Shown here piece after piece: positions 11,484 through 57,414 of a DNA stretch of 64,000 nt. A program made the position numbers and the translations under genes. Location: contig NIVC01000544.1 of the NCBI GenBank assembly GCA_002269645.1, positions 310,001 through 374,000 on the forward strand. Direction: 5' to 3'. Source of the DNA: Macrostomum lignano (taxonomy: Eukaryota). The notes under the pieces are model-generated. The model saw nothing but the letters and a program-made list of their open reading frames with translations. It ran no database searches and was not told where the DNA came from. Numbering within the stretch: the stretch's first letter is position 1; every line of letters begins with the position of its first letter.

Positions 11484-11815
<332 letters not shown>

Positions 11816-12913: not shown

Positions 12914-13306
<393 letters not shown>

Positions 13307-13869
13307 AAAACAAGATAGATTGTTGTTGCCTCACCTTTGCCGTCCCACTATCTCACCTCCACTGGCCCTCTGTCACTTTCTGCCCTCCTATCTCCAGTGT
13401 TCGTCAGGGCCCTGCCAACCCACACTACTTACAGCACTTAAGCTGAAACTGTTTAACAGGTCGTCTCCATTCTAATTTATGCGGCTTATTCTCAGTTATT
13501 CTGTTAAACTCGATGCAAAAATGCATCACTCTACCCTATTCTCTTAGATATTGTGCAGGCACAGATTTTATTGGTTGAAAATTATATTGCAAAAAGATCT
13601 AGCACTCTTTATAATTATGCTCCTAAAAATGAGTCTCCAGTTTCGCTTTCTGGAACTACGGGAGCAATTTCGATCAAAGGTAAGCGTTGCAGTTTTACTT
13701 TCTTAGCTATAGGAACATTTTCTATATCCATCATTGCTTTCTGCAAGTCTGCATCGTAAGCTATTTTTCTGAAAGATGAGCTGGCTTTTCAACAACTCCT
13801 CCTTGAGCCATGACTAAACCATATACCCTAAACCTTAGCCCCTGAGTCAAACCCTCTTTACCCGAATTA

Positions 13870-26195: not shown

Positions 26196-29100
26196 TCAAT
26201 CGTCGTCCAGCTCAAAGATGACGCTACTAGTCAGCTGAGAAGCGCCACCGACAGAGACTGTCGACGACTGACCGACAGCTTTGGTCGCTTTGGCGGCGGG
26301 CGGCTTCTGAGACGGCGGTGCCGGCGGCGGTGGCGACAGGGGAGACGCCGCCGCGGAAGCAACAACAGCGGCGGCCGCGGCAACAGTCTCAGCCTCCTCA
26401 GCTTCATCATTGCCGTCGACAATTCTGAAGTCGTCGCCGTTTTCGTCGCCGTCGTTATAAAATTCATCGTCATTAGCGTAGCAGCCTTCAGAGCTTCGTC
26501 GGACCCGAGCAACGCGCCAACCGGAAGTAGAACCGGAGCCGGAACCAAAACCGGAAGCAGAACCGGAAGCAGAACCGGAAGCAGACGAAGGTTCCACAAT
26601 GGTAGGCGCCGTAGTGTCGCTGTTGTGCCGACGTCGACGAGTTTCGCGCTGTTTTTGGCGCTTCTTGCGATTGCGCAACGTCTGATGAAAAGCGCTGATG
26701 GTGGCCGTTGTGCTGTAGTGGGAGAATAGGGAAGCGGTGAGATGGGAATCTGTTTGACTCAACACTTCTAAGACTCTAAATAGACACGTAGCTATTGAGT
26801 TGGATGGATTGCTAATCTACAGACACATAACTAGCGCATACCTGTAATTAGCCGACTCCACGTGACTTGAGAAAGACACAGATCTATTGAGCAACACATT
26901 CTGCTGCTGCTGTTGACCCTGACTGCTAGACAAAGAGCTGGACAAATCGTCAGACGAAGACAAGGATGGACTTCTTGTAAACTTGAGAATTCCTTGCACA
27001 CGGGATTGAGACTGCTGATCTTGCTGTTGCTTCTGCTGTTGAGCAGGCTGAGGCGCCTGTTGCTGGGCAGTCACTGCCACCGGTTTGTCTCGAACATCTT
27101 CGCCAACACCGTCTAGCCTGACTGTGAGCCGGTCGCCGCTCAGTTCGGTGACCACAAGAGATGATGGAGCAGCCGATGTTGATGCAGCAGAAGCTGCAGA
27201 TGGCACAGCAGAGTACTGAGCCAGACAGCCAGCTAAGCTCTTATTCATATTTGGCAGTTGAATGAGTGTTTTAGCAATTGACCCATCGCTGACCGAGGTG
27301 GGTGACGGTTTGGCCTGCAGGATCAGCTGATCAAGCCATTGGTCTTTGCGAGTCTTAACAAATCTGACAACAATATTGTCTTGATTGGCCTGTTAAGAAT
27401 GATGATTTATTTATAATATGATTAGGCTTAGATTAAAATATTCATAAAGAAAATTAACATAACTGAAAACAGTACATTAAAGTATATAACGTACATTATA
27501 GAATACACAGTAGATTAAAGTATAGTACAATACTTTTCAGTACAAAACATACATTACAGTACATAACAATACATTGTAGTAAATTACATTACATAAAAAT
27601 ACATCACAATAAATCATAGTACTTAACAATACATCACAGTAAATTACAGTACAAGCAGTACATTACAGTACATGCAATACATCAGAGATTCGAGATCCAA
27701 TTAGAATTAAGGACAAAGAAGACAACATATTACACACAGGTTAACATTCTCCTGTACCTGCACAAAGTCCACAGTGAAATCCGATCGCATCACAGCCAGG
27801 CTGTAGTCGCTACGCCAGCCTCCGGAACCGACGCTGGCAAAGCTGACTGCCCAGCAGCAGCCGCCGCTTGACACCTCGGCCTCTTTAATAGACTCCGGAT
27901 CAACATTCTTCACGTCAATCAGCATTGTCAGATGACTGTCAGTCTGATTACAGCGAATAGCCGTGCTAGGTAGCAATTGACCAACTCGAAATTCTTCTTT
28001 CATACTAGTACTACTACTATCAGTAGCATTCTCAGTAGTATTGGTAGCATCGGTAGGTTTAGCATCAACAGACGAAGCGGTCTCAGAGGAGTCTGGAAGC
28101 TCTTCAATAAGCGGAGCCGGGTCTGGCATAGCAACAGCGGACGAAACAGACTGCTCAACTGATCTCTGTTGAGCAATACACGGCAGGATTAGCGTAAGCC
28201 GATGCGATTTGCGATCGAATTTTGCCGATCCATTGTCCTCGGTTACAGGGTAGGGCAAGCGGAGCTGCAGGTTGTAAGCGGCTGAAGACTGCTGACTGGT
28301 GACGCGTAAATCACGGTTGTCAACGTCAACATCGATAGCCTGGGCCGTGGTGACGCCTAGGATGCGAAATAACAGGCATTGTCTCTTTGTTGCTAGGCAA
28401 GGGGATTTGTGGAATTAGGATGCTTTGGTGCGTAGGGGATGGGACTGGGGGATGATGGTATAAACGGGTGATGGGACTACGGGGTGATGGGACTGTGGGG
28501 TGATGAGACTACGGGGTAATGGGACTGTGGGGTGATGGGACTGTAGGGTGATGGGACTACGGGGTAATGGGACTGTGGGGTGATGGGACTGTGGGGTGAT
28601 GGGACTACGGGGTAATGGGACTGTGGGGTGATGGGACTGTGGGGTAATGGGACTGTAGGGTGATGGGATTATGGGGTGATGGGACTACGAGGTGATGGGA
28701 CTGTGTGGTGATGGGACTGTGGGGGGATGGGACTACGGGGTGATGGGACTGTGTGGTGATGGGACTGTGGGGTGAGGGGACTGTGGGGTGGTGAGACTGT
28801 GAGGTGATGGGACTGTGGGGTGATGGGACTGTAGGGTGATGGGACTATGGGGTGGTGGGACTGTGGGTGATGGGACTAGAAGGTTTAAATTAGCTATGAG
28901 ACAAAGCTACGCAAAAAAAGCTTACCAGGCAGTTCCACAACAATTTGCACACTATGCGGGCAGCTCTGACTACTGCCAGCAAGCGCAGTAGTATGAGACC
29001 CATCCGACGGACTTTCGTAGGCGAAATCGCCGAAATCGCTTTGATAAGAGTATTTAATCTCGTATTTCGGCTGCTTGGGCGAATTTTTAGTCGACGGCGA

Positions 29101-31136
29101 CGATTCGTTGTCGCCTTCGGCGGCGCGATCCTGGAGATCGAACTCGCGACCTTCGGCAGTGGGAGTTTCGCCAGATTGGGTATTGTTATAGTGTTGAACA
29201 AACGGATTTGGCGGCTCAGTCTCCAGCTGGGCCTGCTTGTCCTCGAAATCTGGTCGCTTGCGGCGGATTACAGTGGCCTGGGGCAGTCCCTGGATCGGGA
29301 TCAAGGAAGTGTTGGTGTGTTTAAGTATCTGCTGAAGTGTATTTAAGTATTTGCTGAAGTGTGTTTAAGTATCTGCCGAAGTGTGTTTAAGTATCTGCCG
29401 AAGTGTGTTTAAGTATCTGCCGAAGTGTGTTTAAGTATCTGTGTTGGTGTGTTTAAGTATCTGCCGAAGTGTGTTTAAGTATCTGCCGAAGTGTGTTTAA
29501 GTATCTGTGTTGGTGTGTTTAAGTATCTGCCGAAGTGTGTTTAAGTATCTGTGTTGGTGTGTTTAAATATCTGTGTTGGTGTGTTTAAGTATCTGCCGAA
29601 GTGTGTTTAAGTATCTGTGTTGGTGTGTTTAAATATCTGTGTTGGTGTGTTTAAGTATCTGTGTTGGTGTGTTTAAATATCTGTGTTGGTGTGTTTAAGT
29701 ATCTGTGTTGGTGTGTTCAAGTATCTGCCGAAGTGTGTTTAAATACATGTTTTAGTGTTTTTACGGTATTTTTGGTGAAAAAAATTAAATTTTTTATTCC
29801 TTGAAGATCTGCTATGTAACAAAAAACAATGTACTACTTTTTACTAAGTAGTAAAATTCTCTCTGGGTCGCTGATTCGGTAATACTCGTAAAGCTCGATA
29901 GTGTAAATGAAAAACGATACGTTTGTTTTAACGCGTACCGTTTCCGGATTTACACTTTCTAACTAGACGTAACAAATGGAGATATTGACAGAAATTTAGT
30001 AATTTTAAAATACATATAATAAAAAAATACAAGCAAAGCAAAGAATCTCCATTCTATCATTGCCAAAAACATTCTGATTGGCTACCGATCATTTCTAGAA
30101 TTGTCGCTATTAGACGAAACAGTTCGTCACGTGACTGCTCCTTAGCCAATAGCGACAGACACAGCAATTATTATGCAACTTTCTACCATCTAACCTTAAA
30201 CGTCATTTTCGGTCGTTTCACAGAGCCTCCGTTAGCGAATTTTATTTGGAAATTTCTTTCAGCTCCTTGAACAGCCGTGTCTTCAATCATCTTCTTGAAC
30301 TGGGCATTGCGCGACGCCATGAGATAGGTGTCCGGATGGAATACGGTGTCAATCACTAGGCAAGTTTGCTTAGACTTGTCCGTGTCCTCTCTTGGCGGTG
30401 CAAAGCTATGCGGTATGGACCAATTGCCGCCGACTTTGCCATTCTGTTCGGTGCGCTGCATAGTGGCCACTTGGATCTTGTCGTTTGTACAGATGTTGAT
30501 GAACACCTGTTGGTGCAGAAAACAAGACGCATTTGATAGTTTTAAATAGGGTAACGCGGTGCCAGCTGGGCGGACAGGCTCAGGACAGGCAAACCCGGAC
30601 CTCTCTGGTGTTTTCAGGCCTGAGAATCTCTGCCAGCTCGTCCGCTACCCTAGGGGCTACTGGGCGAGCGACCATCCACCTCCTGGACTCTATGGGCGAA
30701 AGCGGAATTGCCATACTGCTATATCCAGATGCCCAGAACTCCCTGCAAGCTGAGTCTAAGAAGTTCGTAAGGCTACGGAAATCTATCCTACACTTCTATC
30801 TACCTGTAGTGTGTAGTATATGTTAAGTAACAAGCAAAGCCTAACCTTTTTTCCACTGGCATCCTTCAGCTTCAGAACGTGACCAGGAGTTGGATGAATG
30901 AACTCAACATCCATGCCTCGCTCCTCTTCTAGTTGAGCAATCTCCTTCTCATAGAGGGCTCTCTGCTCCGGATTCTGCAGTTCCTCAACATACTCTTGGA
31001 ACAGTTTGCGAAATTCTTCTTTTTTAAAGGCTTCAGTAAATCTGTTAATCTCCTCTGGAGTCATATTGAGATCTTTGAATACATTTCCACTGCTGCCACT
31101 GTTGTCTTTGTTGCTATTGGCCATTGTTTGAGCCAT
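26196..31136 (-). CDS. DNAAF2: Protein kintoun (dynein axonemal assembly factor 2, PIH1 domain), about 876 aa
   Basis: Phase-consistent exons 31136-30846, 30506-30195, 29289-28926, 28356-27758, 27389-26842, 26712-26196. Kintoun hallmarks: FKKEEFRKLFQEYVEEL.NP..RALYEKEIAQLEEERG, FIHPTPGHVLK, VFINIC, WSIPHSFAPPRED, VFHPDT, LPYPV..GSAKFD, basic RKKRQKQRE and C-terminal IFELDD. Confidence 0.93.
28437..28878. repeat. 16-bp G-rich minisatellite (gggactgtggggtgat) in kintoun intron 3
   Basis: About 27 tandem units with G3-G4 runs. Confidence 0.94.
29310..29745. repeat. 22-bp minisatellite (gtgtgtttaagtatctgccgaa / ..gtgttg) in kintoun intron 2
   Basis: About 19 tandem units in two variants. Confidence 0.94.
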
Positions 31137-36779: not shown

Positions 36780-39700
36780 ATGGCATCAATGGACAGGTGT
36801 CTAGTAACTTTCTTTGGCGATGGAGACAACGATAGCGATACAGACTGTCAGAGTCTTACACCAGCCTCTTATAGCGGGTCTAAAAGAGCTACCACAGCTG
36901 GTGTAGAGATTTCTAACCAGTCTGCAGACTGCTTCAAACCCCAGCGCCGACAATCAGCTAGGGCTGAACGGCGTCGGTTAAAACGAAACAGTAAAAGTTC
37001 TTATAATACAGAAGAAGACGACGATCGCGTTCAGAGCAGCAACTTAACCCGATCTCAGACGATGCACTGTAGCAAAAGTTGCGGTGAATTGTTGCCATCC
37101 AGTCTGCCGCCGGAGAATGATGAAGGCAACATTGAATACAAATTGAAGCTTGTTAAACCGACCTCCTCGCGATTGGAGCATCTGGTTACGCAGTTGAAAT
37201 GGCGATTAGCGGAAGGTCAAGGCCAAGCTGTCTACGAATTGGGCGTTGAAGATAATGGGGTGGTGCTAGGGCTCACCAAGATGGAGCTAAATGAGAGTCT
37301 GCGCACTTTAGAGGCTATGTGTCGCCGACTTAATGCTAAATATACTATTCTGCGTGAACGACAGGTGAGTGTTATTCAAGAAATACATGTGACTGAAGTC
37401 AATTCTCAGTGATACTTAAAGGTCTAGGTAGCTGGTCAACTCAGTCCATGATACTCAAGGTTGAGATTTGAGATTAGCCGAGGTCAACTCAATCCATGAA
37501 ACTCAAGGTTGAGATTAGCTGAGGTCAACTCAGTCCATGATACTCAAGGTTGAGATTTGAGATTAGCTGAGGTCAACTCAATCCATAAAACTCAAGGTTG
37601 AGATTAGCTGAGGTCAACTCAGTCCATGATACTCAAGGTTGAGATTAGCTGAGGTCAACTCAGTCCATGATACTCAAGGTTGAGATTAGCTGAGGTCAAC
37701 TCAGTCCATGATACTCAAGGTTGAGATTTGAGATTAGCTGAGGTCAACTCAATCCATAAAACTCAAGGTTGAGATTAGCTGAGGTCAACTCAGTCCATGA
37801 TACTCAAGGTTGAGATTAGCTGAGGTCAACTCAGTCCATGATACTCAAGGTTGAGATTAGCTGAGGTCAACTCAGTCCATGATACTCAAGGTTGAGATTT
37901 GAGATTAGCTGAGGTCAACTCAATCCATAAAACTCAAGGTTGAGATTAGCTGAGGTCAACTCAGTCCATGATACTCAAGGTTGAGATTTGAGATTAGCTT
38001 GAGGTCAACTATCTTCACCTAACTCTCATCCTCCAGATTGACAACGGAACGCGCAAAGCACAAGAGATTCTGATCCGCAGATTGCCAAACGACAACATAG
38101 AATTAGTAGAAAGTCGTTTAGCAGTACTTGGTAATTTAGACGCCGGAAAATCCACGTTGTTAGGCGTGCTAACCCAAGGAGATTTGGACAATGGCCGGGG
38201 CAGAGCCAGATTAAATTTATTTCGTCATCCGCATGAAATTCAAACCGGCTATACGTCGAGCGTAAGCTCAGAAATTCTCGGCTTTGATGCTCGCGGAAAT
38301 CTGATTAATTATAGCGGCAACAGGTGCGTTGAGGATATACTTGACGAGAGTAGCAAATTGTATAGGCTAATTGATCTAGCAGGTCATATCAGGTATCAGA
38401 AGACTACACTGCGAGGCCTTATTGCTCACGATCCGCATCTGGTGATGCTGGTTGTGTCTTCCGTGACTGGACTGACGGATATGGCTCAGGAGCATGCGGC
38501 ACTTGCGGTTGGATTGCAGGTGATGAGGGCTTAAGTTTTTGGTATGTATCTGACTGGATTAGCTGTTATCTTACGGGTGATTCTTACATGATAAGGATAA
38601 GCTAAAATTGTTTAGCTACAGGTTTGGATTAACCAATTCAGCTACAGGTGAGGATTAGCCAATTCAGCTACAGGTGAGGTTTAGTCAATTCAGCTACAGA
38701 TGAGGATAAGCCAATTCAGCTACAGGTGAGGATAAGGGGATTAAGCTACAGGTGAGGATTAGTCAATTCAGCTACAGGTGAGGATTAGTCAATTCAGCTA
38801 CAGGTGAGGATTAGGGGATAAAGCTACAGATGAGGATAAGCCAATTCATCTACAGGTGAGGATAAGGGGATTAAGCTACAGGTGAGGATTAGTCAATTCA
38901 GCTACAGGTGAGGATTAGTCAATTCAGCTACAGGTGAGGATTAGGGGATTAAGCTACAGGTGATGATTAGGGGATTAAGCTACAGGTGAGGATTAGGGGA
39001 TTAAGCTACAGGTGAGGATTAGGGGATTAAGCTACAGGTGAGGATTTTGAGATTAAGCTACAGGTGAGGATTAGGGGATTAAGCTACAGGTGAGGATTAG
39101 GGGATTAAGCTACAGGTGAGGATTAGGGGATTAAGCTACAGGTGAGGATTAGGGGATTAAGCTACAGGTGAAGATTAGGGGATTAAGCTACAGGTAAGGA
39201 TTAGGGGATTAAGCTACAGGTAAGGATCAAACCTATACTAAATCCGACACCTCTCTCTCCTACAGGTGCCCTTCATAGTGGTGATCACGAAGATCGATCT
39301 GTGCGATCACGGGCCAGTGCTGGCCTCAGTTGAGGCCTGGCTGAAAGCTACAGGCAACAAGCGAGTACCCCTGGTAGTGCAGACCAAGGATGACGCAATC
39401 ACAGCTGCAGACAATATTTTCCAAGCTGGCGGCAGTGTCACTCCGGTGTTTCCGCTGTCCTGCGTCACAGGCTCCGGCTTGTCTCTGCTAACTGAATTTC
39501 TCAACGTTGCCCCAACGAATCCGCAGTCTCGAATCGGCCTCGGTTCGAGGCATCTTCAACAGCAGCAGCAGCAGCAGCAAAGATTTGCTCAGGAATTCTG
39601 CGTTGACAGCGTGGCGTCGCTGTGCGGCTCTGGCAAGTTCAGCTACGTTCTGTCTGGTCCGGTGTTGAACGGCCAGCTGCGAGAGGGCGAACTGCTTAAG

Positions 39701-40843
39701 CTTGGGCCCGGAGTTGACGGGGTCTTTGTTACGGTGCGGATTACCGGACTAAATCGGAATCGGCTGCCCTGCGGCGCGGTGCAGGCCGGGCATTGGGCAT
39801 CTGTGACTGTCTGTCTGCAGCTGGAGGACAGGTAAGTGGCTTAGAAAATCGCCCTAATCTACCGTGAGAATCGCCTCTCCAATATTACCGTGAGAATCGC
39901 CCCTGATCTTACCGTGAGAATCGCCCCTGATCTTACCGTGAGAATCGCCCCTGATCTTACGTTGAGAATCGCCCCTGATCTTACCGTGAGAATCGCCTCT
40001 GATCTTACCTTGAGAATCGCCCCTGATCTTACCTTGAGAATCGCCCTCAGTCTTACTGTCAAAATCGCCCCTGATCTTACCGTGAGAATCGCCCCTGATC
40101 TTACTTTAAGAATCGCTCCTGATCTTACTTTAAGAATCGCCCCTGATCTTACCGTGAGAATCGCCCCTGATCTTACCGTGAGAATCGCTCCTGATCTTAC
40201 CGTGAGAATCGCCCCTGATCTTACCGTGAGAATCGCCCCTGATCTTACCTTAAGAATCGCTCCTGATCTTACTTTAAGAATCGCCCCTGATCTTACCGTG
40301 AGAATCGCCCTCAATCTATCTTACCGTGAGAATCGCCCTCAGTCTTACTGTAAAAATTGCCTCTGATCTTACCTTAAACTCCGCAGAAACTGGGGCTCGC
40401 ACTCGTTGCCACGCGTAGCTGAGAGTTTCGCCAGACGGGGCGCCTTCCTAATCCCATTGAATAGCCATCCACCAGCTGTGCTCAGCTTCAGCGCCGAGGT
40501 GGCGCTGCACTGCCGACAGCGCGGCGGCGGTGGCCTCAGCGGCGGTCCGCTCCGTCACAATCAACCGGTGAACATCCTGTGCGGAATTGTCTGCCAACAG
40601 GCCATTGTTAGCAATGGATTTTTAGCATCAGCATCCGCGTCATCAGGTTTGAATTCGAGTAAACGGCGTCAACAGCAACAGAGGCGAATGGACTGCAGTG
40701 TGGCCAGTCCAGTCCAGGTTCACCTGCGATTTGCCAAGCAGGCCGAACTGTTGCGACCGGGCGATCGTCTCGTGCTTCGCAGCGGTCACCGACTGCTCGG
40801 AGTTGGTCGAGTATTGCAAACAAACAACCTGTTAGAGAGCTGA
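36780..40843 (+). CDS. GTPBP2: GTP-binding protein 2 (translational GTPase, eEF1A/HBS1-like), about 696 aa
   Basis: Exons 36780-37364, 38037-38519, 39266-39831, 40387-40843 (phase-consistent). LPPENDEGNIEYKLKL, LKWRLAEGQG, G1 GNLDAGKS, TQGDLDNGRGRARLNLFRH (GTPBP2- rather than GTPBP1-type), G3 DLAGH, G4 TKID. Confidence 0.93.
37425..38010. repeat. 41/48-bp minisatellite in GTPBP2 intron 1
   Basis: Unit gagattagctgaggtcaactcagtccatgatactcaaggtt, with or without an extra gagattt. Confidence 0.94.
38610..39226. repeat. 26-bp minisatellite (ctacaggtgaggattaggggattaag) in GTPBP2 intron 2
   Basis: About 24 units; most contain CAG|GTGAG and many contain TTAGGG. Confidence 0.94.
39845..40375. repeat. 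24-bp minisatellite (gtgagaatcgcccctgatcttacc) in GTPBP2 intron 3
   Basis: About 21 tandem units. Confidence 0.94.
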
Positions 40844-43455: not shown

Positions 43456-43986
43456 TCACCCGCTCAAATAGTCCACCGTTTTTCGTCGCCTCATCCGGCG
43501 GGCCCAATCGATTGCGCAGCAGCCGAACGAATCGCGTCGGCTCCAATCAGCGACGCCTAAGCAGATTAATTGTCGTACAACAACGTCGCCTTGGTTGCCG
43601 TTATTCTCGAGGCTGCTGTTTTCGTTGTCGTCGTTGTTGTCAAGCATGGCGGCTCGCATCAGCGGAGTGAGTCCGACAAGTTTCGTGGCAGCGTTAACTG
43701 GAGCTCCAGCCTCTATTAGTATCCGAGCTCCGGCCTCGGTGGCAACTCGGTGAAGGCTGGTCTCGCCCATCAGATCGGCGCAGCTGACATCGGCGTCAAC
43801 TGAACGTACAAGGAATTCAACTAGCGGTGCAGAGCCGTCTGGGCCTAGTCGAGAGGCTGCCAGCATCAGAGCTGTCTGTCCGTAGGCGTCCGGTAGGTCG
43901 CAGTTGACTCTGGTAGCGACTTGTTGGAGACCAGCAAGGTCGTTTGATCGGACCAGATTGGCCAACTGCTGCTGGGTGGCTGTTTC
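43456..43986 (-). CDS. Ankyrin-repeat protein, terminal exon (5' part not resolved)
   Basis: Acceptor ctctccag| at 43987; ankyrin motifs DAYGQTALMLAA, DLMGETSLHRVA, GLTPLMRAA, DSFGCCAIDWA; stop at 43456. Confidence 0.72.
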   Translation of the reverse strand, partial: ETATQQQLANLVRSNDLAGLQQVATRVNCDLPDAYGQTALMLAASRLGPDGSAPLVEFLVRSVDADVSCADLMGETSLHRVATEAGARILIEAGAPVNAATKLVGLTPLMRAAMLDNNDDNENSSLENNGNQGDVVVRQLICLGVADWSRRDSFGCCAIDWARRMRRRKTVDYLSG

Positions 43987-44855
43987 CTGGAGAGGCCAGA
44001 TGAAATGTCAAGGGCCACCGCGAGGAATTTTCTCAGATTTTCAACCAATTAGCTCCCGAGCGCATTTCTGAGGTCTACAGAAGCTCCGAGGTTGGACCTC
44101 CTACATTGTCAAAGTCATCTAGGGATAAAATGATATAAATATAGGCAAAATGGTTGCGGAAACACTGGCGAAACGCCTTCGTTGACATCCTCCCAACAAC
44201 TAGCGCTGAGAGATGGGCCGTAGCAGCGCGGCGCACTGATGTGCCAGCGGCCCAGGCTCGATTCCAAGTGCAGTCGCATTTATTTGAGGCTAAATTGGAA
44301 TCTCGGCTTGGCTCTGCTCGTGCAATTAACGCCCAGCTTGAGGGCCTACCCCCCCCCCCCCAAGGCACAGTGAAGTGTACATGCCTAACGATATATAACG
44401 TTAGGGCCGCTGTACACTCCTGTGTGAGTGTGTGTCTTTGCGTAAGACTGCGTACGTATCCGCGCGCTTGTGTGCCTGCTCAGGGGAGTCGGCGGAATGG
44501 GCAGCAATGCCTCTCACCGGTTGTGTGACAATGTCGCAATTAAAGTCGCGCAGAGAATCGAACCAGCTTGGGGGTCGTGAGGCGAGAGTTAGACGGATTT
44601 TTTACCGCTGAGCTGCTGTGCCCAAAAACTGGCATGTCATCACCAAAAAACATCATTTAATATTTAAATTGTTTTGTTAAATAATATCCACACGTACCAA
44701 CTCACCTCAGCAGTGAGGCCCACAATTTGACCGAAAATCCAGAAGCCCGAAATAGAGAGTCGCATTTCTCTGAGGAAGAAAAACAAAAACATTGAAATCA
44801 TCAGTCAAGTTGTTGTGGTGGTCAAGTATTCCTGGATACTGTGTGTCCTCTTGAT

Positions 44856-45006
44856 GCAGTTCACCCATGCATCTGTAAAATGGGCGCCAGCATTAGCTGG
44901 GGTAATTGAGGGTGTGTGTGACGACCCCCCAGTCCTTGGACTGAACAGCCGTACGCAGCCTTCAGATGCGCCGCGCAATAGCTGCGGCTGAGCTGTCGGT
45001 TGCACA
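44856..45006 (+). mobile_element. 5'-truncated copy of the SINE at 58542
   Basis: High identity to ~58660-58806 (cagttcaccc..ctgtaaaatggg..cattagctggggtaattgaggg..gagctgtcggttgcac). Confidence 0.85.
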
Positions 45007-45128
45007 TCTGGCCCAATTGGGGCACATGTAATCAACTACATGTACATTTACTTAAAACAATAGATCATTCTCAAAAAATGGAATGGTACATAAAAGACGA
45101 AAGGTGTTTACTTGCCTAAGCCCCTGAC

Positions 45129-45529
45129 CACAGATGTTAGAATAACCAGATGGGCCACTCAGCACATTTGCATGTAAGCTACTTTCAGTTCAGTAGTGAG
45201 TTAAACAAAATAATTTTAATGTATATATGTAATACCCCCGCCCCAACCCAATTTTTATTGCCATTCTTGGAATTCCAGCCTAAAGCTACTTCCATGTACA
45301 TTTCAGTGGACTGGCAAATGTACATTATTGCTGAACCAATTAGCAAGTTGTTTACGCCTGCAAGCTTGGGCTTCTAAACTTATCAAAGTCATTTCAGCGC
45401 CGTGTACTCTTATAAAAATAGCTTATGTATTCTTCTTTGCTACTTAACTGAAAGTAGAAAGCTGTTTTACTAATTACGAGCTATATATGCCTGAGTGGCC
45501 CATCTATAGTTATTCTACTAGTATCTGTG
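45129..45529. mobile_element. MITE, P-element-like (CACAG termini, 8-bp TSD CCCCTGAC)
   Basis: TSD at 45121-45128 and 45530-45537; imperfect TIR cacaga..agaataac..agatgggccactcag; homologous to 50002-50476 in the opposite orientation. Confidence 0.85.
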
Positions 45530-45606
45530 CCCCTGACCAATTGACACTAACCATTGTCAACTTTGCTTAACTTGCCGCCACGTATACATAGAGTAGCCAC
45601 AGCCGC

Positions 45607-46140
45607 TCACATCTGAATAATCGCAGCCAAATCCTCGTGTCCGCAGCATCTGGCCAAGTCCAGCGCTGTCTGGCCTCGCCGGTTGCGCGCCTCCAGCAGC
45701 AGTTGCCTGCGAATGCTGCGCTTTGAACCGCTGCGCAACAGGTGCAACAGGTGTTTAGCGCAATCAATTTGGCCACATTCAGCCGCTTCCATCAGCGGAG
45801 TCGAATCGTCTGTTTGATTTCTAAGAAATTTGACTCGAAACGGCAGCAGCGTCAGCAGCCGCAGGCGACCCCGCCGAGCCGCCAGGTGAGCTGCCGTGTT
45901 GCCGTCAGCGTCTGTCGTGTTGCCGTCAGCGTCTGTCGTGTCTGACTGAGCGCCCAGGTGTAAAAAGTACTCGATACACTTTGCTGATTGAGGCCGACTG
46001 GGGACTGTTGAATTGGCAATCAGCATGAGCACTGAACGGCCCTGTTCATCCACCTGCCGGACCAGAGGCTTTGTGACCAGCTCTCGCACCTGGCTGAAAT
46101 TGCCTTGAATGGCTAGCTCGGCTAATTGGACTATTGACGC
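45607..46140 (-). CDS. Ankyrin-repeat protein exon (5' part not resolved)
   Basis: Acceptor ttttcag| at 46141; motifs DEQGRSVLMLIA, DADGNTAAHLAA (with an in-frame 21-bp TDADGNT duplication), DSTPLMEAA, RRGQTALDLA. Confidence 0.75.
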   Translation of the reverse strand, partial: ASIVQLAELAIQGNFSQVRELVTKPLVRQVDEQGRSVLMLIANSTVPSRPQSAKCIEYFLHLGAQSDTTDADGNTTDADGNTAAHLAARRGRLRLLTLLPFRVKFLRNQTDDSTPLMEAAECGQIDCAKHLLHLLRSGSKRSIRRQLLLEARNRRGQTALDLARCCGHEDLAAIIQM

Positions 46141-46335
46141 CTGAAAAGTATTAATTATAATAATGATATTTTTAATTAAAACTAATACACGTAAATAAAC
46201 TATATGCGTATGGTCCTCTCTGCGCCATTCTTTACTCAGCCATGCCTTCCAGCTGTGGCCCAAATTTCTTGCTGTTGTCTAGATGGCTTTTCTATGGTTT
46301 GTCTGTGGAAATTATCTCTGCAACGCTGCGACGTC

Positions 46336-48010: not shown

Positions 48011-48729
48011 CGACCCCAGATAGCTAATTTAGGTGAGGTGAGGTAACTCCCAACTTGTTAGGCCTTCAAAACAGACATCGAAAGTTGAAAGTCCAACTAT
48101 AGAACAAAGAAGACAAGTTAGTCCAGAGACAACACAAAAATTTCTGACCGAGAAGAACTCCCAACAGCATACAAACGTGCAAAATATGGTCACCAGAGTT
48201 TTTGTTAAAGAATGAGAGAGAGCCATTTGCGTGTTGTCTATGGCCCAACTTAGGGAATCTCTATTTTAATTGGTAGGCTTGAAACAATGGATTCCAAATA
48301 TAGATAGATAGAATAGAATAGATGAAGAATGCTTACTGAATTGCGGAGAACAGTATAGCCCAAGCAGCAAACCACATACTGCAGACTCTTCTTTCACATC
48401 TCTCTCTATCCCTATGTCAACAGCAGAAATCGTACAATACGCACAACACTCTCGTAGATGATGTGTCTTTCAGGGTGTACAGAAATTGAGAAGAGAGAGA
48501 AGAGAGAGAAGAGAGAGGTCGACGGACTTAGAGGCGAACTGCTCAGCCCCAACTGTTGCTAACCAAAACCAACCCCATGCGCTGTACAGTTTTAATTTTC
48601 TCTCCCCCTCTTCTGTCCACACTGCTCCTATATTTCCATTATAAAGCAGCTTCTAAAAGAGATTTTTAGTTTCACGTTTGGCTTTTGGATAAAAATTCAA
48701 AAAACAGAAATTCAGAGCAACACACAAAA

Positions 48730-49134
48730 ATGACGGGACAAAAACACCTGATGACCAATGTGAACCTGCTATATGACAGTCTGTTATCAACTGGTCACGT
48801 TAACAGTTGCGCTCTGCTGTCCAGAGCGGACGGATCGGTCCTAGCTAGCTCTGTAGGCTACAGCCCGTCTCCTGAACAGCTACAGGTCGTCCTCGATGCG
48901 TTTGCCAGTCCGGCAGAGGCGCGAAAAAGTGGCGCTAAATTTGAAGGTCGCGACTACAAAGTGATGCGCGCGGACAAGAACTCTGTGTACGCTCGGACAG
49001 GTAAGAAAGGCCTAGTAGCTGTACGGACGCATGGTCACGTGATTCTGGCCACGTACGGCGACGCTCACTGTCCGGCTGTGTGCATCGAGGCGTGCGAAAA
49101 ATTAGGCGAATATTTGCGACTAAAAGACAAATAG
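48730..49134 (+). CDS. PFN4: Profilin-4-like protein (intronless)
   Basis: LLYDSLLSTGHVNSCALL, FEGRDYKVMRADKNSVYA, ILATY..PAVCIEACEKLGEYLR matches the PFN4-type profilin pattern. First ATG at 48730 (alternative 48751); the ORF track starts at a non-ATG codon. Confidence 0.85.
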   Translation: MTGQKHLMTNVNLLYDSLLSTGHVNSCALLSRADGSVLASSVGYSPSPEQLQVVLDAFASPAEARKSGAKFEGRDYKVMRADKNSVYARTGKKGLVAVRTHGHVILATYGDAHCPAVCIEACEKLGEYLRLKDK

Positions 49135-50001
49135 AGGAGATCTACAGCTGTATACTTAAGCCCGAGTTACCTGACTTTGTGACTCGTGAAATATATATAT
49201 ATATATTTGTTCGCTCTTATATATCGCGACCGATTGTTTTCATACACTTTTCAGAGAATAGCCTTTTGATTTTTTAAACGGTAATAAGGACCATTTTTGT
49301 GGCAAGGACCTTTCGGTAGATAGTAGGCGGATGGCCGTTAGATGGGTAGATTCGGTGAATTAGGAAGATTATGGACAACTTTAAAAGATATTCATTATTA
49401 TGGAAAATTAAGGAGCATTAGCTAAATATGCCAAAAAGCATGCAGATTGACTGATTGTATATTACTATATTTTTAAATTCAATACGCCTAGCGTAAATCT
49501 ATGCTGTAATTTCAAAAATACTACGACTAATCACCATCATTGTTATTGGTATATAAACTTATGACGGTACACTCTTATACACATAACCTATGCCTGTCAT
49601 CCTATCACATATCACACTTTGCAAAAAGTTAAACAGATTTTTTTAGTTTGTTATTATAAAACAAACAGAAATAAATAACTTTTGACTCCGTTGTAGGCTA
49701 TTCTATTTAATAAGTGGAGAGTAAGGTGCTAGCTATATTTCAAAGTTCAACTTCAGTTAAAGGTTTTATTTTATGAGTTACGGCATTAAAACTATCAAAA
49801 AATGAAATAGTTATAAATAAAAATCAAGATAAACACTTAGTAAGAATCGAAAGTGATCGATAACGCATTGTAGCATAGGTGTTTGTAGTGACGCAATTTC
49901 AATTCAGTGTCTTAAATTGAAGATAAAATTTAGAAAAAAGGTGCCACATGATCGTCGAAAGTTTTTCTATTGAATGGGGCACATTTCATCTCTGCACTGA
50001 C

Positions 50002-50476
50002 CACAGGTACTAAAATAACTAGATGGGCCACTCAGACATCCACCTATACTAATTTATACTTAGTAAAACAGCTTTCTACTTTCAGTTCAGTAGCAAAGAA
50101 GAATACGTCAACAAGCTATTTTATAAAAATAAAGGCAGCTGAAATGACTTTGATAAGTTATCTTGGAAGCCCAGGCTTGCAGGCGTAAACAGCTTGCTAA
50201 CTGGTTCAGCAATAATGTACATTAGCCAGTCCACTGAAATGTACATGGCCGCTTTGGCTGAATCGAATTCCGAGAAAGGCAATAAAATTTGGGGGCGCGG
50301 CCGGGGGAGTGTGGAAATGCGCGGTTGGAGGGCTTAAGCTGTGGGGTAAGAGCCAATAAATGAGCCTTGGCTTTAAAATACTTTAAAATGCTTCTGTTTA
50401 ACTTACTACTGAACTGAAAGTAGCTTATACGCAAATGTGCCGAGTGGCCCATCTAGTAGTTATTCTAGTTTCTGTG
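50002..50476. mobile_element. MITE, P-element-like (CACAG termini, 8-bp TSD GCACTGAC)
   Basis: TSD at 49994-50001 and 50477-50484; same family as 45129-45529. Confidence 0.85.
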
Positions 50477-50526
50477 GCACTGACAGTCGAAAGTGTAAAT
50501 TAACATAATCCAAACAGTTCGCGGTA

Positions 50527-53500
50527 TCAAAACACGCTATCATCAGTGCCCGTCTCGTCCAGAAACTGTTTCCAAACAACTGGAAACTGATTAAACACCA
50601 AATCCTTGAACTGATCTCTCTGTGTAGACAAACGACGAACGCAGAACTTCAACAAATCAGCTCCAATCTGCTGCCAACGCTGAGTAATCTCGCTGCTCAG
50701 GCCGAGCCAATTCTGTATCTCGCGGATTCTTTTATGAATATTTTTCTGATGCATATTGGCATCGAATTGGCCGGGTCGTTTAGCGCCGAACGAGGCGGCG
50801 GATTTGATTTTTTCGCGCAGTGCTCGAATCAGAATGTACCAAGCGGTTTTCTTTTTTAACAAGCCGATCACTTCGTTTGATGCGTCGATAAAGTACAGCA
50901 CTTCGCCTTCGTAGCCGTGGCCGCGGCGGATCTGCCGGTGGTGCAAGTTTTCTTAGATTTTTTTTAGAATAGATTAGCAACGCTGGTGGTTAAATTCTTT
51001 CATGGCTTATATTTGAAAGGGCGATTCTTTTACAGGTAATTTTTAGGGGTGATTCTTTTTTTGCCGATCATTGTTTACTCAGCAACAGTCAAAAGTTCCA
51101 CCCACCAAGCGAGATAAAAATTTTCTCACTTATTGCGACAAATTCTCACTCACAATTCAACCCTCAAGTTACGCAACTAAGCCAGCCACGGCGAGGAAGG
51201 GAAAGTTGACTGTATCAATAACTTGTAATAAATGTCAGTCGCACAAGATCATAAAAATTTTTAATGCAATATTCAGTTAGAATCGCGATGCTTAATAACG
51301 CGTGTGGGATCCCCTCGCACGCAGAAATGCGCGATTCTGCGGGGCATCCCCAGGATGAGGCGGCGCAGAAAGTCCTGGAGAAGCTGCTGCCAAGCGTTTT
51401 CAATGGCAGGACGCAGCTCCGCAACATTCCGGATTCTATTTTCGAATGCTGCGTGGGATGCTCGATGGGATTCATGTCTGGGGACCGGGAAGGCCAGCGC
51501 AGAGTGCGCAGCTGTAGCTGTTCTTTCAGTTGACTGACAGCATCGGCTCGGTGTGGCGGCGCGTTGTCCTCCTGGACCATTAAGCAGACCCAAGCCACCC
51601 CCAAGTGGCAATAAGATTTGTTCGTGCCGTAAGTTGCGTCACCCGCAATAAGTGAAAAAATCATCTCACTTAGTGGGGTGGAACTTTTGACTGTTGCTGA
51701 GTATAGGGATAATTAATCTATAGAAGATTCTTCCTCTAGCTATTTCTTTCGGGGGGGGGGGCGATTTTTCCCATAGGCGATTTTTTCTAGTGGCGATTTT
51801 TCGTGTAAGCTATTTTCTTAAGAAATAAGCAGCAACTTTCTTAAGGGCGCAAATTTTCCTAGGGGTGATTTTCCTAGAGGCGATTTTCCCAGGGGCGATT
51901 TTTTTAGGGGCGATTTTCCTAGGGGCGATTTTTCTAAGGCGATTTTCCTAGGGGCGATTTTCCTAGGGGCGATTTTCCTAGGGGCGATTTTCCTAGGGGC
52001 GATTTTCCTAGAGGCGATTTTCCTAGGGTCGATTTTCCTTGGGGCGATTTTCCAAGGGGCGATTTTCCTAAGGGCGATTTTCCTAGAGGCGATTTTCCTA
52101 GGGGCGATTTTCCTAGGGGCGATTTTCCTAGGAGCTATATTTCCTAAGCGCGATTGTTTCTAAGATATACTTTTCCTAGGGGCGATTTTCCTAGCGGAGA
52201 TTTTTTTAGGGGCGATTAATTCTAGGGGCGATTTTTCCAAGTTAGTGATGATGATTAACTTTTCACTTTAAAGCATCGATAGTTAAACAGACAATAAAAA
52301 CATTTAAAAACAATTTATGCTATCTACCAGTTCGCAGACGGATTCAAATTCCGAAGGCTCGCAGACTTCATAGCTAGTCGGTTCCAATCCGAAACTGTCT
52401 CTGGCCAAATCTATGGCCGAATCTGGCGGCATGTAAGACATGCTGCCGCTGTCTATGTCGTGACTTGTGAACGTTATGAACTTCGGAATTGGCCTGAAAT
52501 AAAGTGCAGGTCAAATGAAGAGGTCTATCTTAATGCATATTGAGGTCTATCTTGGTGTCATTGAGGTCTATCTTGGTGTCATTGAGGTCTATCTTGGTGT
52601 CATTGAGGTCTATCTTGGTGTCATTGAGGTCTATCTTGGTGTCATTGAGGTCTATCTTGGTGTCATTGAGGTCTATCTTGGTGTCATTGAGGTCTATCTT
52701 GGTGTCATTGAGGTCTATCTTGGTGTCATTGAGGTCTATCTTGGTGTCATTGAGGTCTATCTTAGTGTCATTGAGGTCTCTCTTGGTGTTTATTGACGTC
52801 TTTCTTGGTGTTTATTGAGGTCTATCTTGGTGTTTATTGAAGTCTATCTTGGTGTTTATTGAGGTCTATCTTGGTGTTTATTGAGGTCTATCTTGGTGTT
52901 GATTGAGGTCTATCTTGGTGTTTAGTGAGGTCTATCTTGGTGTTTAATGAGGTCTATCTTGGTGTTGATTGAGGTCTATCTTGGTGTTGATTGAGGTCTA
53001 TCTTGGTGTTTAGTGAGGTCTATCTTGGTGTTTAATGAGGTCTATTTTGGTGTTGATTGAGGTCTATCTTGGTGTTGATTGAGGTCTATCTTGGTGTTGA
53101 TTGAGGTCTATCTTGGTGTTTAATGAGGTCTATCTTGGTGTTTAGTGAGGTCTATCTTGGTGTTTATTAAGGTCTATCTTGGTGTTTAATGAGGTCTATC
53201 TTGGTGTTGATTGACGTCTATCTTGGTGTCATTGGAGTTTACGAGCATGGTCTAATTAAGAAACAACCTTGATGAAATGCAAACTTACACTTTATTAGTG
53301 AGCAGTTCAATGTGCTGATGATCACTGTACAATATCTCAAATACAGCTGTGACAAACTGTTCCCTCAAATAGTCGACAAATGCCTTGCGGTTGTCGGCTG
53401 GCAGCTGGTCAAAGTAACACAGAAAATCTGCACAAAATTTGCGAGCCACTCGGCACCTGTCGTGGGTGAAATGCTGCAGATCCTCTGGTTGGAAGGAGGA

Positions 53501-54262
53501 ATCAAACAATCATATAATTAATAACACATCTAATTGCAACCATAGCAACCATTTTGCGTCCATAGTAACCAATTTCGCGTCCATAGTAACCATTGTTGCA
53601 TCCATATTAACCATTTCTGTCTTCATAGTAACCATTTTGCGCCTACAGCACAACCATTTTGTCGGCCGTAGTAAACATTTTTGCGGCCATAGTAACCATT
53701 TTTGCGCCTATAGCAACCATTTATTCGGCCGTAGTAACTAATTTTACGTCCATAGTAACCGTTTTTGCGTCCACAGTAACTAACTTTGTGCCCATAGCAA
53801 CCATTTTACACCCACAGTAACGGTTCTACAGACCATTTCCATAACATCCTGTTTACGAACCCTAGTAACCATTTTTGCGATGGTAGTAATCGTTTGTGGA
53901 AGTTTTGCGACCCTAGTAATCATTTGGTGCCTTTAGTAACCATCTTTGTGTCCCTAGTAATAGCCTAGTAACCAATTTTGAGACCCTAGTAACTAATACA
54001 ATTATATACTTACCGAACTGCCTAAACAAAATATGAGTGTTTTTTGATCCGCCTAAAAAGTAGTCCACACCGCCCAGTCGAATGACGGCCACGTGCAGCG
54101 CCTCGCCGTTGGCTTTGCGAGTTCGAACTAGCCGGGTTGCCGAGGCGATTGGCTTGGAAAAGTACTGGTGCCACACCTGCGGGTGGAAATTTTACAAGCA
54201 TGCTGATACATATGAAGTTACGACCTTTAATCTCCTGACTAAATTAACTAACTAACTAACTT

Positions 54263-54305
<43 letters not shown>

Positions 54306-55696
54306 GCCTAACCAACTGACTGACTAACTAACCAACTAACTAACTAACTAACTAACTAGACTCAACAAGCCCCGTGCTCACCTGATCTGCAACGCAATCG
54401 GACCTGTCATCGTCATCGCCAGAACCTCCGGTGAACTTTTTCAACGCTTTTAAAGCTACGTAGGTGCCAGGCGGAGCCGACTGAAGGCAGCTGGCTTTAC
54501 TGTCGCCTGCGCCTTCATCGCGATGCATCTTTCCTTGTAGTCGGACCTCCAGAACCGTGTTGCCCCTGGCAACCATTTTACGCAGATCGGCGTGCCGATC
54601 GTAAACGGCATCGTCTGGCCCGTGCTTAACTTTTACCTAACGGCACGGTATGCATGCGTGCTCAGGAAGAAATTCAAATGATGGAAACGGCACCTCTCTG
54701 AACTACTACTACATACTCGGATATACTCGTACTATAATTGTGGGCGCCGTCATTTTTTTTGGGGGGGGGGCAGGTCCCTCTTGAACCCCTCTCTTGGCTT
54801 GGTCCCCTGCTCTTGCTCTTCTTTCAGTTTCTTAGCAATGAACAGTTAATTTAGTGACTTTAAGAGAATTAATATAAAAAACTTTTTTATGGACAGTCGT
54901 AATGTACATTAGACCAGCGCCACTGAAAATATAATAATTAATTTGTCAGCCGCGCGGCGGGTTCAAGAGGGTCGCCAATAAACAACTTTGATTAGTCAGC
55001 CGCGGCGTAGGGAGGTAAGAGGGTCGCCAATAAACAACTTTGATTAGTCAGCCGCGGCGTGGGGGGGTAAGAGGGTCGCCAATAAACAACTTTGATTAGT
55101 CAGCCGCGGCGTAGGGGAGTAAGAGGGTCGCCAATAAACAATTTTGATTAGTCAGCCGCGGCGTAGGGGGGGGGTAAGAGGGTCGCCAATAAACAACTTT
55201 GATTAGTCAGCCGCGGCGTGGGGGGGTAACAGGGTCGCCAATAAACAACTTTGATTAGTCAGCCGCGGCGTGGGGGGGGGGTAAGAGGGTCGCCAATAAA
55301 CAACTTTGATTAGTCAGCCGCGGCGTGGGGGGGGGGAAAGAGGGTCGCCAATAAACAACCTTAAGTCGGCCATCTTGTACTCATGAAAAAGCAGAAAGCT
55401 GTTATGCTACAGACCTGAACATCGTGCAGAATGCATTGATAACCCTTGGGTAATATGCAATCTGGCACCGTTGTGGTATGAAGTTTCACGTGAGCATGAT
55501 TGCTAGCCCAGTTGAGATATCTGCACGTTGAAATAAATTTAGCTCGTAACAGTGATAAAAGCCATAAAAAGCATATTGGTCGAGACATGTCGCGAAGCAT
55601 TAATCATTACCTCTCTCCTTGTTCATTTCGTTCCTGCCACGTGAGTACAGTACAGGCAGTTGCATTCGACGAGGCGCTTGCATCCTCAGTTGCCAT
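50527..55696 (-). CDS. Stand-alone ATP-dependent RNA ligase of the T4 Rnl1 / fungal Trl1-ligase type (predicted), 458 aa
   Basis: Seven phase-consistent GT-AG exons: 55696-55611, 55520-55415, 54636-54382, 54176-54014, 53484-53289, 52493-52328, 50931-50527 (1377 nt). Motifs in the correct order: VARG..KALKKFTG, motif I RKANG (K170), Ia GSKN, III TAVFE (E253), IV EGEV (E332), V KKKTAWY. Confidence 0.8.
51078..51701 (-). mobile_element. Internally deleted Tc1 (DD34E) transposon in ligase intron 6
   Basis: TA TSD at 51076-51077 and 51702-51703; TIR CTCAGCAACAGTCAAAAGTTCCACCC; transposase remnant QEDNAPPH..WPSRSPDMNPIEH with 34 residues between D and E. Confidence 0.9.
51750..52240. repeat. 15-bp minisatellite (ggggcgattttccta) in ligase intron 6
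   Basis: About 28 units; degenerate units also lie on the other side of the Tc1 (~51015-51060). Confidence 0.92.
52520..53235. repeat. 21-bp minisatellite (ttgaggtctatcttggtgtYa) in ligase intron 5
   Basis: About 33 tandem units. Confidence 0.95.
53535..53990. repeat. Degenerate ~21-23-bp catagtaaccattt repeat in ligase intron 4
   Basis: Recurrent gtaacc core. Confidence 0.75.
54245..54358. repeat. (CTAA)n microsatellite in ligase intron 3
   Basis: Tetranucleotide run. Confidence 0.93.
54965..55360. repeat. ~52-56-bp minisatellite in ligase intron 2
   Basis: About 7 units of gagggtcgccaataaacaactttgattagtcagccgcggcgt followed by a variable G-run. Confidence 0.93.
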
Positions 55697-55869
55697 TATT
55701 AACTGCAAGTTTTAATTAATAGCTCCTAATATGCTGATTGTAGATAGATATTACCTATTTTTACCTACATGTAAATATGCTTTTTCTTAGCTTCAGTTGG
55801 ACTTTAAAAAGGACTTTAGAAAGACATACTTATGGAACCGCCCAATAGTAAGTGGAACTATAGACGGTG

Positions 55870-56790
55870 CTACTATGGACAGTGGACTATGGACAGTGGG
55901 ACTATGGACAGTGGGACTATGGACAGTTGGACTATGGACAGTGGGACTATGGACATTGGGACTATGGACAGTGGACTATGGACAGTGTGACTATGGGCAG
56001 TGGGACTATGGACAGTGGACTATGGACAGTGGGACTATGGACAGTGGAACTATGGACAGTGGGACTATGGACAGTGGAACTATGGACAGTGGGACTATGG
56101 ACAGTAGGAATATGGACAGTGAAACTAAGGACAGTGGGACTATGGCAGTGGGACTATGGACAGTAGGAATATGGACAGTGGAACTAAGGACAGTGGGACA
56201 ATGGCAGTGGGACTATGGACAGTAGGAATATGGACAGTGGAACTAAGGACAGTGGGACTATGGACAGTAGGAATATGGACAGTGGAACTAAGGACAGTGG
56301 GACTATGGCAGTGGGACTATGGACAGTGGAACTATGGACAGTGGGACTATGGACAGTAGGAATGGACAGTGGAACTATGGACAGTGGGACTATGGCAGTG
56401 GGACTATGGCAGTGGGACTATGGACAGTGGGACTATGGACAGTGGGAATATGGACAGTGGGACTATGGACAGTGGGACTATGGACAGTAGGAATATGGAC
56501 AGTGGAACTAAGGACAGTGGGACTATGGCAGTGGGACTATGGACAGTGGGACTATGGACAGTGGGACTATGGACAGTAGGAATGGACAGTGGAACTATGG
56601 ACAGTGGGACTATGGCAGTGGGACTATGGCAGTGGGACTATGGACAGTGGGACTATGGACAGTGGAACTATGGACAGTGGGACTATGGACAGTGGAACTA
56701 TGGACAGTGGGACTATGGACTGTGGGACTATGGACTGTGGGACTATGGACAGTGGGACTATGGACAGTGGGACTATAGACAGTGGGACTC
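55870..56790. repeat. 15-bp minisatellite (ggactatggacagtg) upstream of the ligase ATG
   Basis: About 60 units with 14-bp variants. Confidence 0.95.
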
Positions 56791-57414
56791 TTGTAACTGG
56801 ACAAGTGACTGAATAAAAACAAATTAAACAGAGACATCAATTTTAAAAGTATCAGATAGCTTCAGTACAGCATCTTTTGATTGTGAGCAGAGCAATAATC
56901 AAATAGGCCATTATTTTAGCCGTAGCATTTAAATTTTAAATAATAGCTATTACTATTAACAAGCTAGACCTTGACAATATATCATAAAAGCCAACTGCAT
57001 TATCATCTAGCTAAAGGGGTAAATTGATAAATCGGAACTTTCAACAAATAAAATGTTCAACGCGTTAATTAGACATAGTGCGATTAACAAATAAATAAGA
57101 CGCGGATGCATTGTGCCCAGTAATTCCACGGCTCATAAGTGAAGTAGCATTTGCTCTAAACAAAAAGGCAAAAATACTTTTGACAGAATGATGATCATGA
57201 CCTGTTGATTGCAATCCTAACAAATTCAAACTGTTTTTGTTATAAATTACTGATGCAATATGTTGTACTCATGGAAAGTTCGTTGCGTTTTTGTGCTGTC
57301 ATTTGCAGGGTAGAATGAGACACTGACTTGTGTGCATAACTTAACTCAAAGGGTTGGTTTGAATTTTCGACATTGAGGAGTCTATTGGGCGTACAAGTTA
57401 GGAAAGAAATCGGG

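Follow-up and report, generated by a model that had tools for sequence, protein, structure and literature searches.

A Macrostomum lignano gene that is probably the orthologue of the amphioxus-type stand-alone RNA ligase

The RNA end-joining enzymes of animals include RtcB, which is GTP-dependent and has a fold and chemistry unrelated to those of the ligases considered here, and RLIG1/C12orf29, which forms a separate family. In addition, an RNA ligase of amphioxus (Branchiostoma floridae), BfRNL, was reportedly characterised by Englert in 2010. BfRNL is a stand-alone, strictly 2'-phosphate (2'-PO4)-dependent enzyme that works with separately encoded polynucleotide kinase (PNK) and cyclic phosphodiesterase (CPD or CPDase), and it complements a yeast trl1-delta mutant once kinase-CPD is supplied (PMC10946426 and others). 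BfRNL resembles Trl1 and plant RNL only weakly; it corresponds to gi|260818956 and heads an Rnl1-related family that the Pfam RNA_lig_T4 model misses (Popow et al., 2012). Amphioxus encodes RtcB, RLIG1, and BfRNL. A stand-alone RNL of Mucorales is likewise monofunctional, sealing-only, and 2'-PO4-dependent, with two conserved arginines (Ghosh et al., 2024; PMC10946426). Here we describe a gene at positions 50527-55696, on the minus strand, of a 64,000-nt stretch of the flatworm Macrostomum lignano (contig NIVC01000544.1 of assembly GCA_002269645.1, positions 310,001 to 374,000), which as a whole is referred to below as the window. The gene encodes a DUF7920 protein and is, quite probably, the flatworm orthologue of the stand-alone RNA ligase of amphioxus type. 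Within the Rnl1 branch of covalent nucleotidyltransferases, this family would be a divergent sister to the ligase domain of fungal Trl1.

The flatworm gene and its amphioxus counterpart

Seven minus-strand exons (55696-50527) splice into a 1377-nt coding sequence (CDS) for a protein of 458 aa, and all six introns have GT..AG borders (lengths of introns 1-6: 90, 778, 205, 529, 795, and 1396 nt). An earlier note on this DNA, made from the sequence alone, had proposed this in-frame splice, which we reproduced; the motifs that it quoted (VARG, ALKKFTG, RKANG, GSKN, TAVFE, HIE, EGEV, and KKKTAWY) are present in the order given, and its codon positions for K170, E253, and E332 are exact. The exons are as follows.

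Exon 1, 55611..55696, minus strand: aa 1-29, with the ATG at 55696-55694 and a phase-2 donor; the intron position and phase are common to amphioxus and oyster.
Exon 2, 55415..55520, minus strand: aa 29-64, with GT-AG borders.
Exon 3, 54382..54636, minus strand: aa 65-149, with the family-invariant pairs R88-G89 (in VARG) and K131-F132 (in ALKKFTG); a loop at about aa 98-118 is lineage-specific and modelled with low confidence.
Exon 4, 54014..54176, minus strand: aa 150-204, with motif I KANG, whose presumed AMP-accepting K170 is codon 54116-54114, and motif Ia GSKN, whose S193-K194 lie at 54047-54042.
Exon 5, 53289..53484, minus strand: aa 204-269, with motif III TAVFE and HQHIE (E253 at 53338-53336; H261 at 53314-53312); both flanking intron positions are as in amphioxus and oyster.
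Exon 6, 52328..52493, minus strand: aa 269-324, a variable part of the nucleotidyltransferase domain; the downstream intron is common to oyster.
Exon 7, 50527..50931, minus strand: aa 325-458 and the TGA, with motif IV EGEV (E332 at 50910-50908), motif V KKK (K350 at 50856-50854; K352 at 50850-50848), an arginine pair (R360 at 50826-50824; R363 at 50817-50815), and the all-helical C-terminal domain.

The spliced product is identical over 458 aa (100%) to GenBank PAA81206.1 (BOX15_Mlig013642g7, 'hypothetical protein', Macrostomum lignano), which UniProt lists as A0A267G5D9, 'DUF7920 domain-containing protein'. Two near-identical M. lignano copies, PAA63062.1 and PAA58791.1, differ at four residues and begin one to two codons 5' of the ATG ('partial'; N-termini LIMATED and IMATED). 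These starts resemble those of 5'-partial transcript open reading frames (ORFs), which suggests that the deposited models, and hence the exon junctions, derive from transcripts. A splice-acceptor-like sequence (ttgcag/TTAATAATG) places an AG at 55702-55701 on the minus strand, 5 nt upstream of the ATG; it may serve as a spliced-leader trans-splice acceptor, which the LIMATED and IMATED starts would fit. In another annotation, two 439-aa models (P0130/P0131) skip residues 185-203 and are probably mis-spliced, since they delete the invariant G192-S193-K194. A pseudogene is ruled out by the intact ORF, the retention of all catalytic residues, and the presence of three copies.

Among the matches listed by the protein search, the closest named homologue was an amphioxus protein (42% identity, 96% query coverage, E 3e-94). 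Its 90% cluster, the only amphioxus cluster among the 120 matches listed, contains XP_002604648.1 (BRAFLDRAFT_126791), a protein of the original B. floridae annotation. The extent of this identity, together with shared intron positions, argues for orthology. Three intron positions, the motifs KANG/SKN/TAVFE/EGEV/KKK, and the arginine pair are common to both proteins, whereas the N-terminus of the flatworm protein is shorter by about 30 residues and a disordered loop at aa 98-118 adds about 19. Furthermore, the flatworm protein resembles BfRNL in being a stand-alone ligase that lacks kinase and CPD domains. These results do not support the earlier proposal, which set the protein apart from the amphioxus RNL as an uncharacterised enzyme: no named homologue among the matches listed is closer than the amphioxus gene itself, and intron positions are shared with it. 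The proposal had also set the KANG motif, as fungal- or phage-like, against the amphioxus RNL; that contrast lapses, since KANG is intrinsic to the amphioxus-type family.

Whether this amphioxus protein is BfRNL bears directly on how the flatworm gene is read. On grounds of parsimony, we take XP_002604648.1 to be, very probably, gi|260818956; full-text literature searches (DUF7920, BRAFLDRAFT_126791, XP_002604648, C3YGD8, and 260818956) yielded no text that ties the two identifiers together. This gap favors the alternative that DUF7920 proteins form a truly uncharacterised metazoan RNA ligase family that has never been assayed, with the enzyme of Englert 2010 being another protein. The database names across the family ('uncharacterized', 'hypothetical', or 'DUF7920') and the failure of the full-text search to find any mention of DUF7920 in the papers covered point the same way. 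However, the lone amphioxus cluster among the 120 matches listed holds a protein of the 2008-09 B. floridae annotation, which is the set used when BfRNL was described. BfRNL has been described as a ligase that stands alone, resembles Trl1 and AtRNL weakly, escapes the Pfam Rnl1 model, and heads its own family. This description fits exactly, and the flatworm protein misses PF09511 as published for the BfRNL family. In addition, the alternative needs two different stand-alone Trl1-like ligases in amphioxus. We consider it unlikely, and based on the fit of the published description, XP_002604648.1 is very probably BfRNL. The flatworm gene does not represent a new enzyme class, as it has relatives across invertebrates and the amphioxus member of this family has very probably been characterised already.

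Domain, fold and proposed sealing mechanism

The sole domain match of the 458-aa protein was Pfam DUF7920 (PF25536), which scored 30.7 bits against a gathering cut-off of 27 over residues 169-361; NCBIfam gave no match. Among 52 relatives, DUF7920 was matched by all but one (51/52), and PF09511 (RNA_lig_T4_1) was matched at E <= 1 by 10/52, with a best value of 3.5e-6; two of the PF09511 scores, from full-length relatives, fell under the 28.3-bit cut-off. An AlphaFold model built on the family alignment (mean pLDDT 90, pTM 0.89) comprises one nucleotidyltransferase domain of mixed alpha/beta structure, after which come five helices (354-451). The single DUF7920 match and single nucleotidyltransferase domain agree with the earlier description of a stand-alone ligase of the Rnl1/Trl1 branch that carries neither a kinase nor a phosphodiesterase domain. 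That description also included a C-terminal extension of about 100 aa; the segment is present and consists of an all-helical domain, which we take to be the counterpart of the C-terminal domain of the Trl1 ligase.

The earlier note had called for a fold search against Trl1 and Rnl1 structures, in which the Trl1 ligase domain proved to be the best match. The top entry in the Protein Data Bank (PDB) found by Foldseek was 9qw7, the adenylyltransferase domain of the Candida glabrata tRNA ligase (E 4e-11), with a TM of 0.68 normalised to the 372-residue target and an alignment of 454 columns that covers most of the target. Archaeal Rnl3 and Naegleria Rnl5 were the next-best matches. In contrast, DNA ligases and capping enzymes gave far weaker, partial matches (E >= 2e-4, TM <= 0.27), and we rejected both identities on the basis of these matches, the lack of an OB domain, and the all-helical C-terminal domain. 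Neither RLIG1 nor RtcB turned up in the Pfam or fold searches of the flatworm protein. The flatworm protein belongs to the same superfamily branch as T4 Rnl1 and has the same motif set, and phage RnlA-type models are detectable structural relatives, although their matches to the flatworm model are much weaker (E 1e-7 to 1e-5, TM about 0.3-0.45). The C-terminal domain of T4 Rnl1 differs, and that enzyme needs no 2'-PO4.

Using profile-profile alignment (hhalign) against Trl1 ligase-domain sequences taken from the PDB, we obtained an alignment with an E of 1e-3 and a probability of only 20%, in which the motifs correspond as follows.

Motif I: flatworm KANG, Trl1 KANG (KENG also occurs).
Motif Ia: flatworm SKN, Trl1 SKH.
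Motif III: flatworm TAVFE, Trl1 TAVAE.
Motif IV: flatworm EGEV, Trl1 EGFV.
Motif V: flatworm KKK, Trl1 KYK.
After motif V: flatworm IRALRE, Trl1 YRQWRE.

The Trl1 profile alignment and the fold match together reproduced the earlier assignment of motifs I, Ia, III, IV, and V. Twelve residues are invariant in the 52 sequences (K170, N172, G173, S193, K194, E253, H261, E332, G333, K350, K352, and R360), and at least 90% of these sequences retain R363. VARG and KKFTG are also invariant in the family, yet we obtained no mapping of either onto residues of Trl1 or T4 Rnl1. In the same 20%-probability hhalign alignment, R360/R363 align with R334/R337 of the Chaetomium enzyme, two arginines that bind a sulfate in the Chaetomium structure and have been proposed as the site for the RNA 2'-phosphate (PMC10946426). 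The flatworm protein resembles the Trl1 LIG domain (PDB 9qw7, 6n67, and 6n0t) in its motif order and in an RxxR pair that follows motif V in a helical C-terminal domain. It differs from Trl1 in having only about 15% identity, no fused kinase-CPD, DUF7920 rather than PF09511, and an N-terminal module that cannot be aligned by sequence. The Mucorales RNLs are close homologues of Trl1-LIG (about 370-390 aa) that were found by PSI-BLAST with Trl1 (PMC10946426), whereas the animal family is far more divergent.

In three relatives, all from uncultured eukaryotes, the same ligase domain is joined to healing modules, in both orders. Two have a LIG-KIN-CPD layout: in P0221, DUF7920 is followed by tRNA_lig_kinase and two HxT motifs (HVTM and HITL), and in P0262 the ligase is accompanied by a P-loop and a weak tRNA_lig_CPD match with HVTL and HVTI. 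The third, P0257, has at its N-terminus a P-loop kinase (AAA_33) and the motifs HITC and HITL, which comprise a kinase/2H-phosphodiesterase module, and continues with the ligase; by eye, this module may resemble CNPase (human CNP). Through such fusions the domain is linked to the kinase and 2H-phosphodiesterase chemistry that gives 5'-PO4 and 3'-OH,2'-PO4 ends.

By family precedent, K170 would react with ATP to form ligase-AMP, the AMP would be moved to the 5'-phosphate end of an RNA, and attack by the 3'-OH of the other end would seal the break. R360 and R363 in the helical C-terminal domain would bind a 2'-phosphate beside that 3'-OH, with the consequence that only ends already healed in trans would be sealed. 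The ends would be prepared in trans by a polynucleotide kinase together with a 2',3'-cyclic phosphodiesterase, and a Tpt1-type phosphotransferase would later take off the junction 2'-phosphate. By analogy, then, the flatworm protein is predicted to have RNA-sealing activity with a 2'-phosphate requirement, and its candidate substrates include tRNA halves, XBP1-type mRNA, and broken RNAs generally.

The same fold and motifs could instead belong to a T4-Rnl1-like general repair ligase that joins plain 3'-OH/5'-PO4 ends, for example in stress-cleaved tRNAs or rRNA, and that does not need a 2'-phosphate. Both are common to the whole Rnl1 branch, including phage RnlA-type proteins, and some relatives are fused to B3_4 or methyltransferase domains rather than to healing domains. 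However, Trl1-LIG surpasses phage Rnl1 as a structural match, the arginine pair matching Chaetomium R334/R337 is conserved family-wide, and other relatives are fused to a kinase and a 2H phosphodiesterase, which is the pair that produces 2'-PO4 ends. Furthermore, the tRNA ligases of yeast, plants, and amphioxus are reported to require 2'-PO4 (PMC10946426 and another paper). General repair of this kind appears quite improbable.

Several observations weigh against reading the flatworm protein as a Trl1-like sealing ligase of amphioxus type, beginning with the low hhalign probability given above. The protein had no match to PF09511 at E <= 1, and neither phmmer with the protein nor hmmsearch with the 52-sequence family profile retrieved a relevant match from the PDB sequences; the link to solved Trl1 structures came only from structure comparison. 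Its N-terminal 168 residues gave no significant hhalign alignment with the Trl1 N-terminus. As for the healing partners, when the kinase/2H-phosphodiesterase module of P0257 was used as a seed to look for a flatworm partner, the database search gave no match at E <= 1e-3, and no healing-enzyme gene was found in the window, where the neighbours encode profilin, ankyrin-repeat proteins, a GTPase, and a PIH1-domain protein. Finally, animals also have RtcB.

Distribution and descent of the family

The protein search returned 161 matches, in which the flatworm protein aligned over 93-100% of its length to proteins of many animals (E 1e-94 to 1e-56). The named relatives are single-domain proteins of about 420-510 aa with 32-42% identity, and they come from amphioxus, many molluscs, nemerteans, an annelid, a bryozoan, hemichordates, a tardigrade, springtails, barnacles, a shrimp, a copepod, and a rotifer. 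For the amphioxus, mollusc, nemertean, hemichordate, tardigrade, springtail, crustacean, and rotifer proteins, the identity is 35-42%. No vertebrate, insect, or nematode protein was among the 120 matches listed. Many unnamed metagenomic or transcriptomic relatives are about 700 aa long and carry a weak B3_4 domain. An exhaustive profile search collected 1663 cluster representatives at E <= 1e-3, including a choanoflagellate and two chytrid fungi.

Some relatives have added C-terminal domains, which are of a weak PheRS-type B3_4 kind in the ~700-aa proteins P0054, P0069, P0085, and P0087, and of the Methyltransf_16 lysine methyltransferase or HAM1_N (chytrid) type in P0157, P0188, and P0166. 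Three mollusc members (P0012, P0049, and P0075) are named 'actin-binding protein IPP(-like)' in GenBank, an apparent propagated misannotation.

Mapping gene structures on the protein alignment, we found that four of the six flatworm introns occupy the same column and phase in oyster and three of the six in amphioxus. Positions held in common with oyster and amphioxus are strong evidence for vertical inheritance since early bilaterians. The earlier note had cited the canonical introns as an argument against a contaminant or recent horizontal transfer, and the conserved positions and phases make that argument stronger than was claimed.

Viral homologues are the evidence in favor of a foreign origin, either by recent horizontal transfer, with a giant virus as one conceivable donor, or as an assembly contaminant. 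In a search of predicted viral structures (BFVD), the best matches were RNA ligases of giant viruses and phages, headed by the 'T4 RNA ligase' of Panulirus argus virus 1 (A0A6G9HDT9; 26% identity, TMq 0.80, E 3e-33); further structural relatives occur in other large DNA viruses, namely Cafeteria roenbergensis virus (CroV; E3T4N1), Homavirus, and Sylvanvirus, so that close structural relatives are found in several nucleocytoplasmic large DNA viruses. Horizontal transfer is countered by the six spliceosomal introns, with four positions as in oyster and three as in amphioxus, and by the choanoflagellate and chytrid members, which fit an ancient opisthokont ancestry. The three near-identical copies in M. 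lignano assemblies argue against transfer and contamination alike, and so do introns that contain a host-type transposon and minisatellites resembling those in the rest of the window. As for direction, transfer from host to virus is likelier than the reverse, and the homologues in lobster and protist viruses may reflect the capture of host genes. A recent foreign origin is thus extremely unlikely, and we retain vertical inheritance of the flatworm gene.

Genomic surroundings and implications

The exons are embedded in repeats that explain the unrelated ORFs among them. Intron 6 contains an internally deleted Tc1/mariner-type transposon (51076-51703) with perfect 28-nt terminal inverted repeats (TACTCAGCAACAG...) and a frame-broken remnant of a DDE_3 transposase (DNAPPHRA...PDMNPIEH); the element lies outside the enzyme CDS and accounts for the unrelated ORFs at 51215-51664. 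Other short ORFs among the exons come from minisatellite arrays with units of 15, 22, 21, 4, and 52 nt. Minisatellites occur in five of the six ligase introns, and the arrays in or near the gene lie at 51853-52235, 52520-53229, 53540-53821, 54245-54358, 54965-55359, and 55851-56500. Nearly all introns and intergenic stretches of the window likewise contain long minisatellite arrays (e.g., 2208-2804, 4577-7707, 11421-13446, and 39859-40366), and such arrays give rise to long spurious ORFs of repeated peptides. An Rfam scan of 49000-57000 gave no match.

Downstream of the ligase gene and convergent with it lies an intronless profilin ORF (48685-49134, plus strand; Pfam Profilin E 2e-30), the two stop codons being about 1.4 kb apart. 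One uninterrupted ORF of 1292 aa (16608-20486, plus strand) with N-terminal ankyrin repeats is unusually long and intron-free for this intron-rich window; by eye only, the hydrophobic C-terminal part resembles a TRP-type channel. Multi-exon genes at 27707-31136 (minus strand), 36780-40843 (plus strand), and 43456-46263 (minus strand) include a PIH1-domain protein with PIH1 N-terminal and CS-like domains, a GTPase with an EF-Tu-type GTP-binding domain, and two ankyrin-repeat ORFs.

Based on these findings, DUF7920 can be read as a BfRNL/Trl1-like RNA ligase domain, which gives proteins now called 'hypothetical' a testable name and mechanism. The enzyme is no amphioxus quirk: a Trl1-like and probably 2'-phosphate-dependent sealing enzyme is vertically inherited and widespread in invertebrates, which bears on the old question of what purpose the animal 5'-phosphate RNA ligation pathway serves. 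M. lignano, a model for regeneration, is genetically tractable and amenable to RNAi or transgenesis. More tentatively, and less probably than not, a yeast-type heal-and-seal pathway built around the DUF7920/BfRNL ligase may be active beside RtcB, with substrates of its own, in most invertebrate phyla (flatworms, molluscs, nemerteans, annelids, bryozoans, hemichordates, cephalochordates, tardigrades, crustaceans, springtails, and rotifers) and may have disappeared through separate losses in vertebrates, insects, and nematodes. If such a pathway has been retained, the standard model animals would mislead on how animals ligate RNA.

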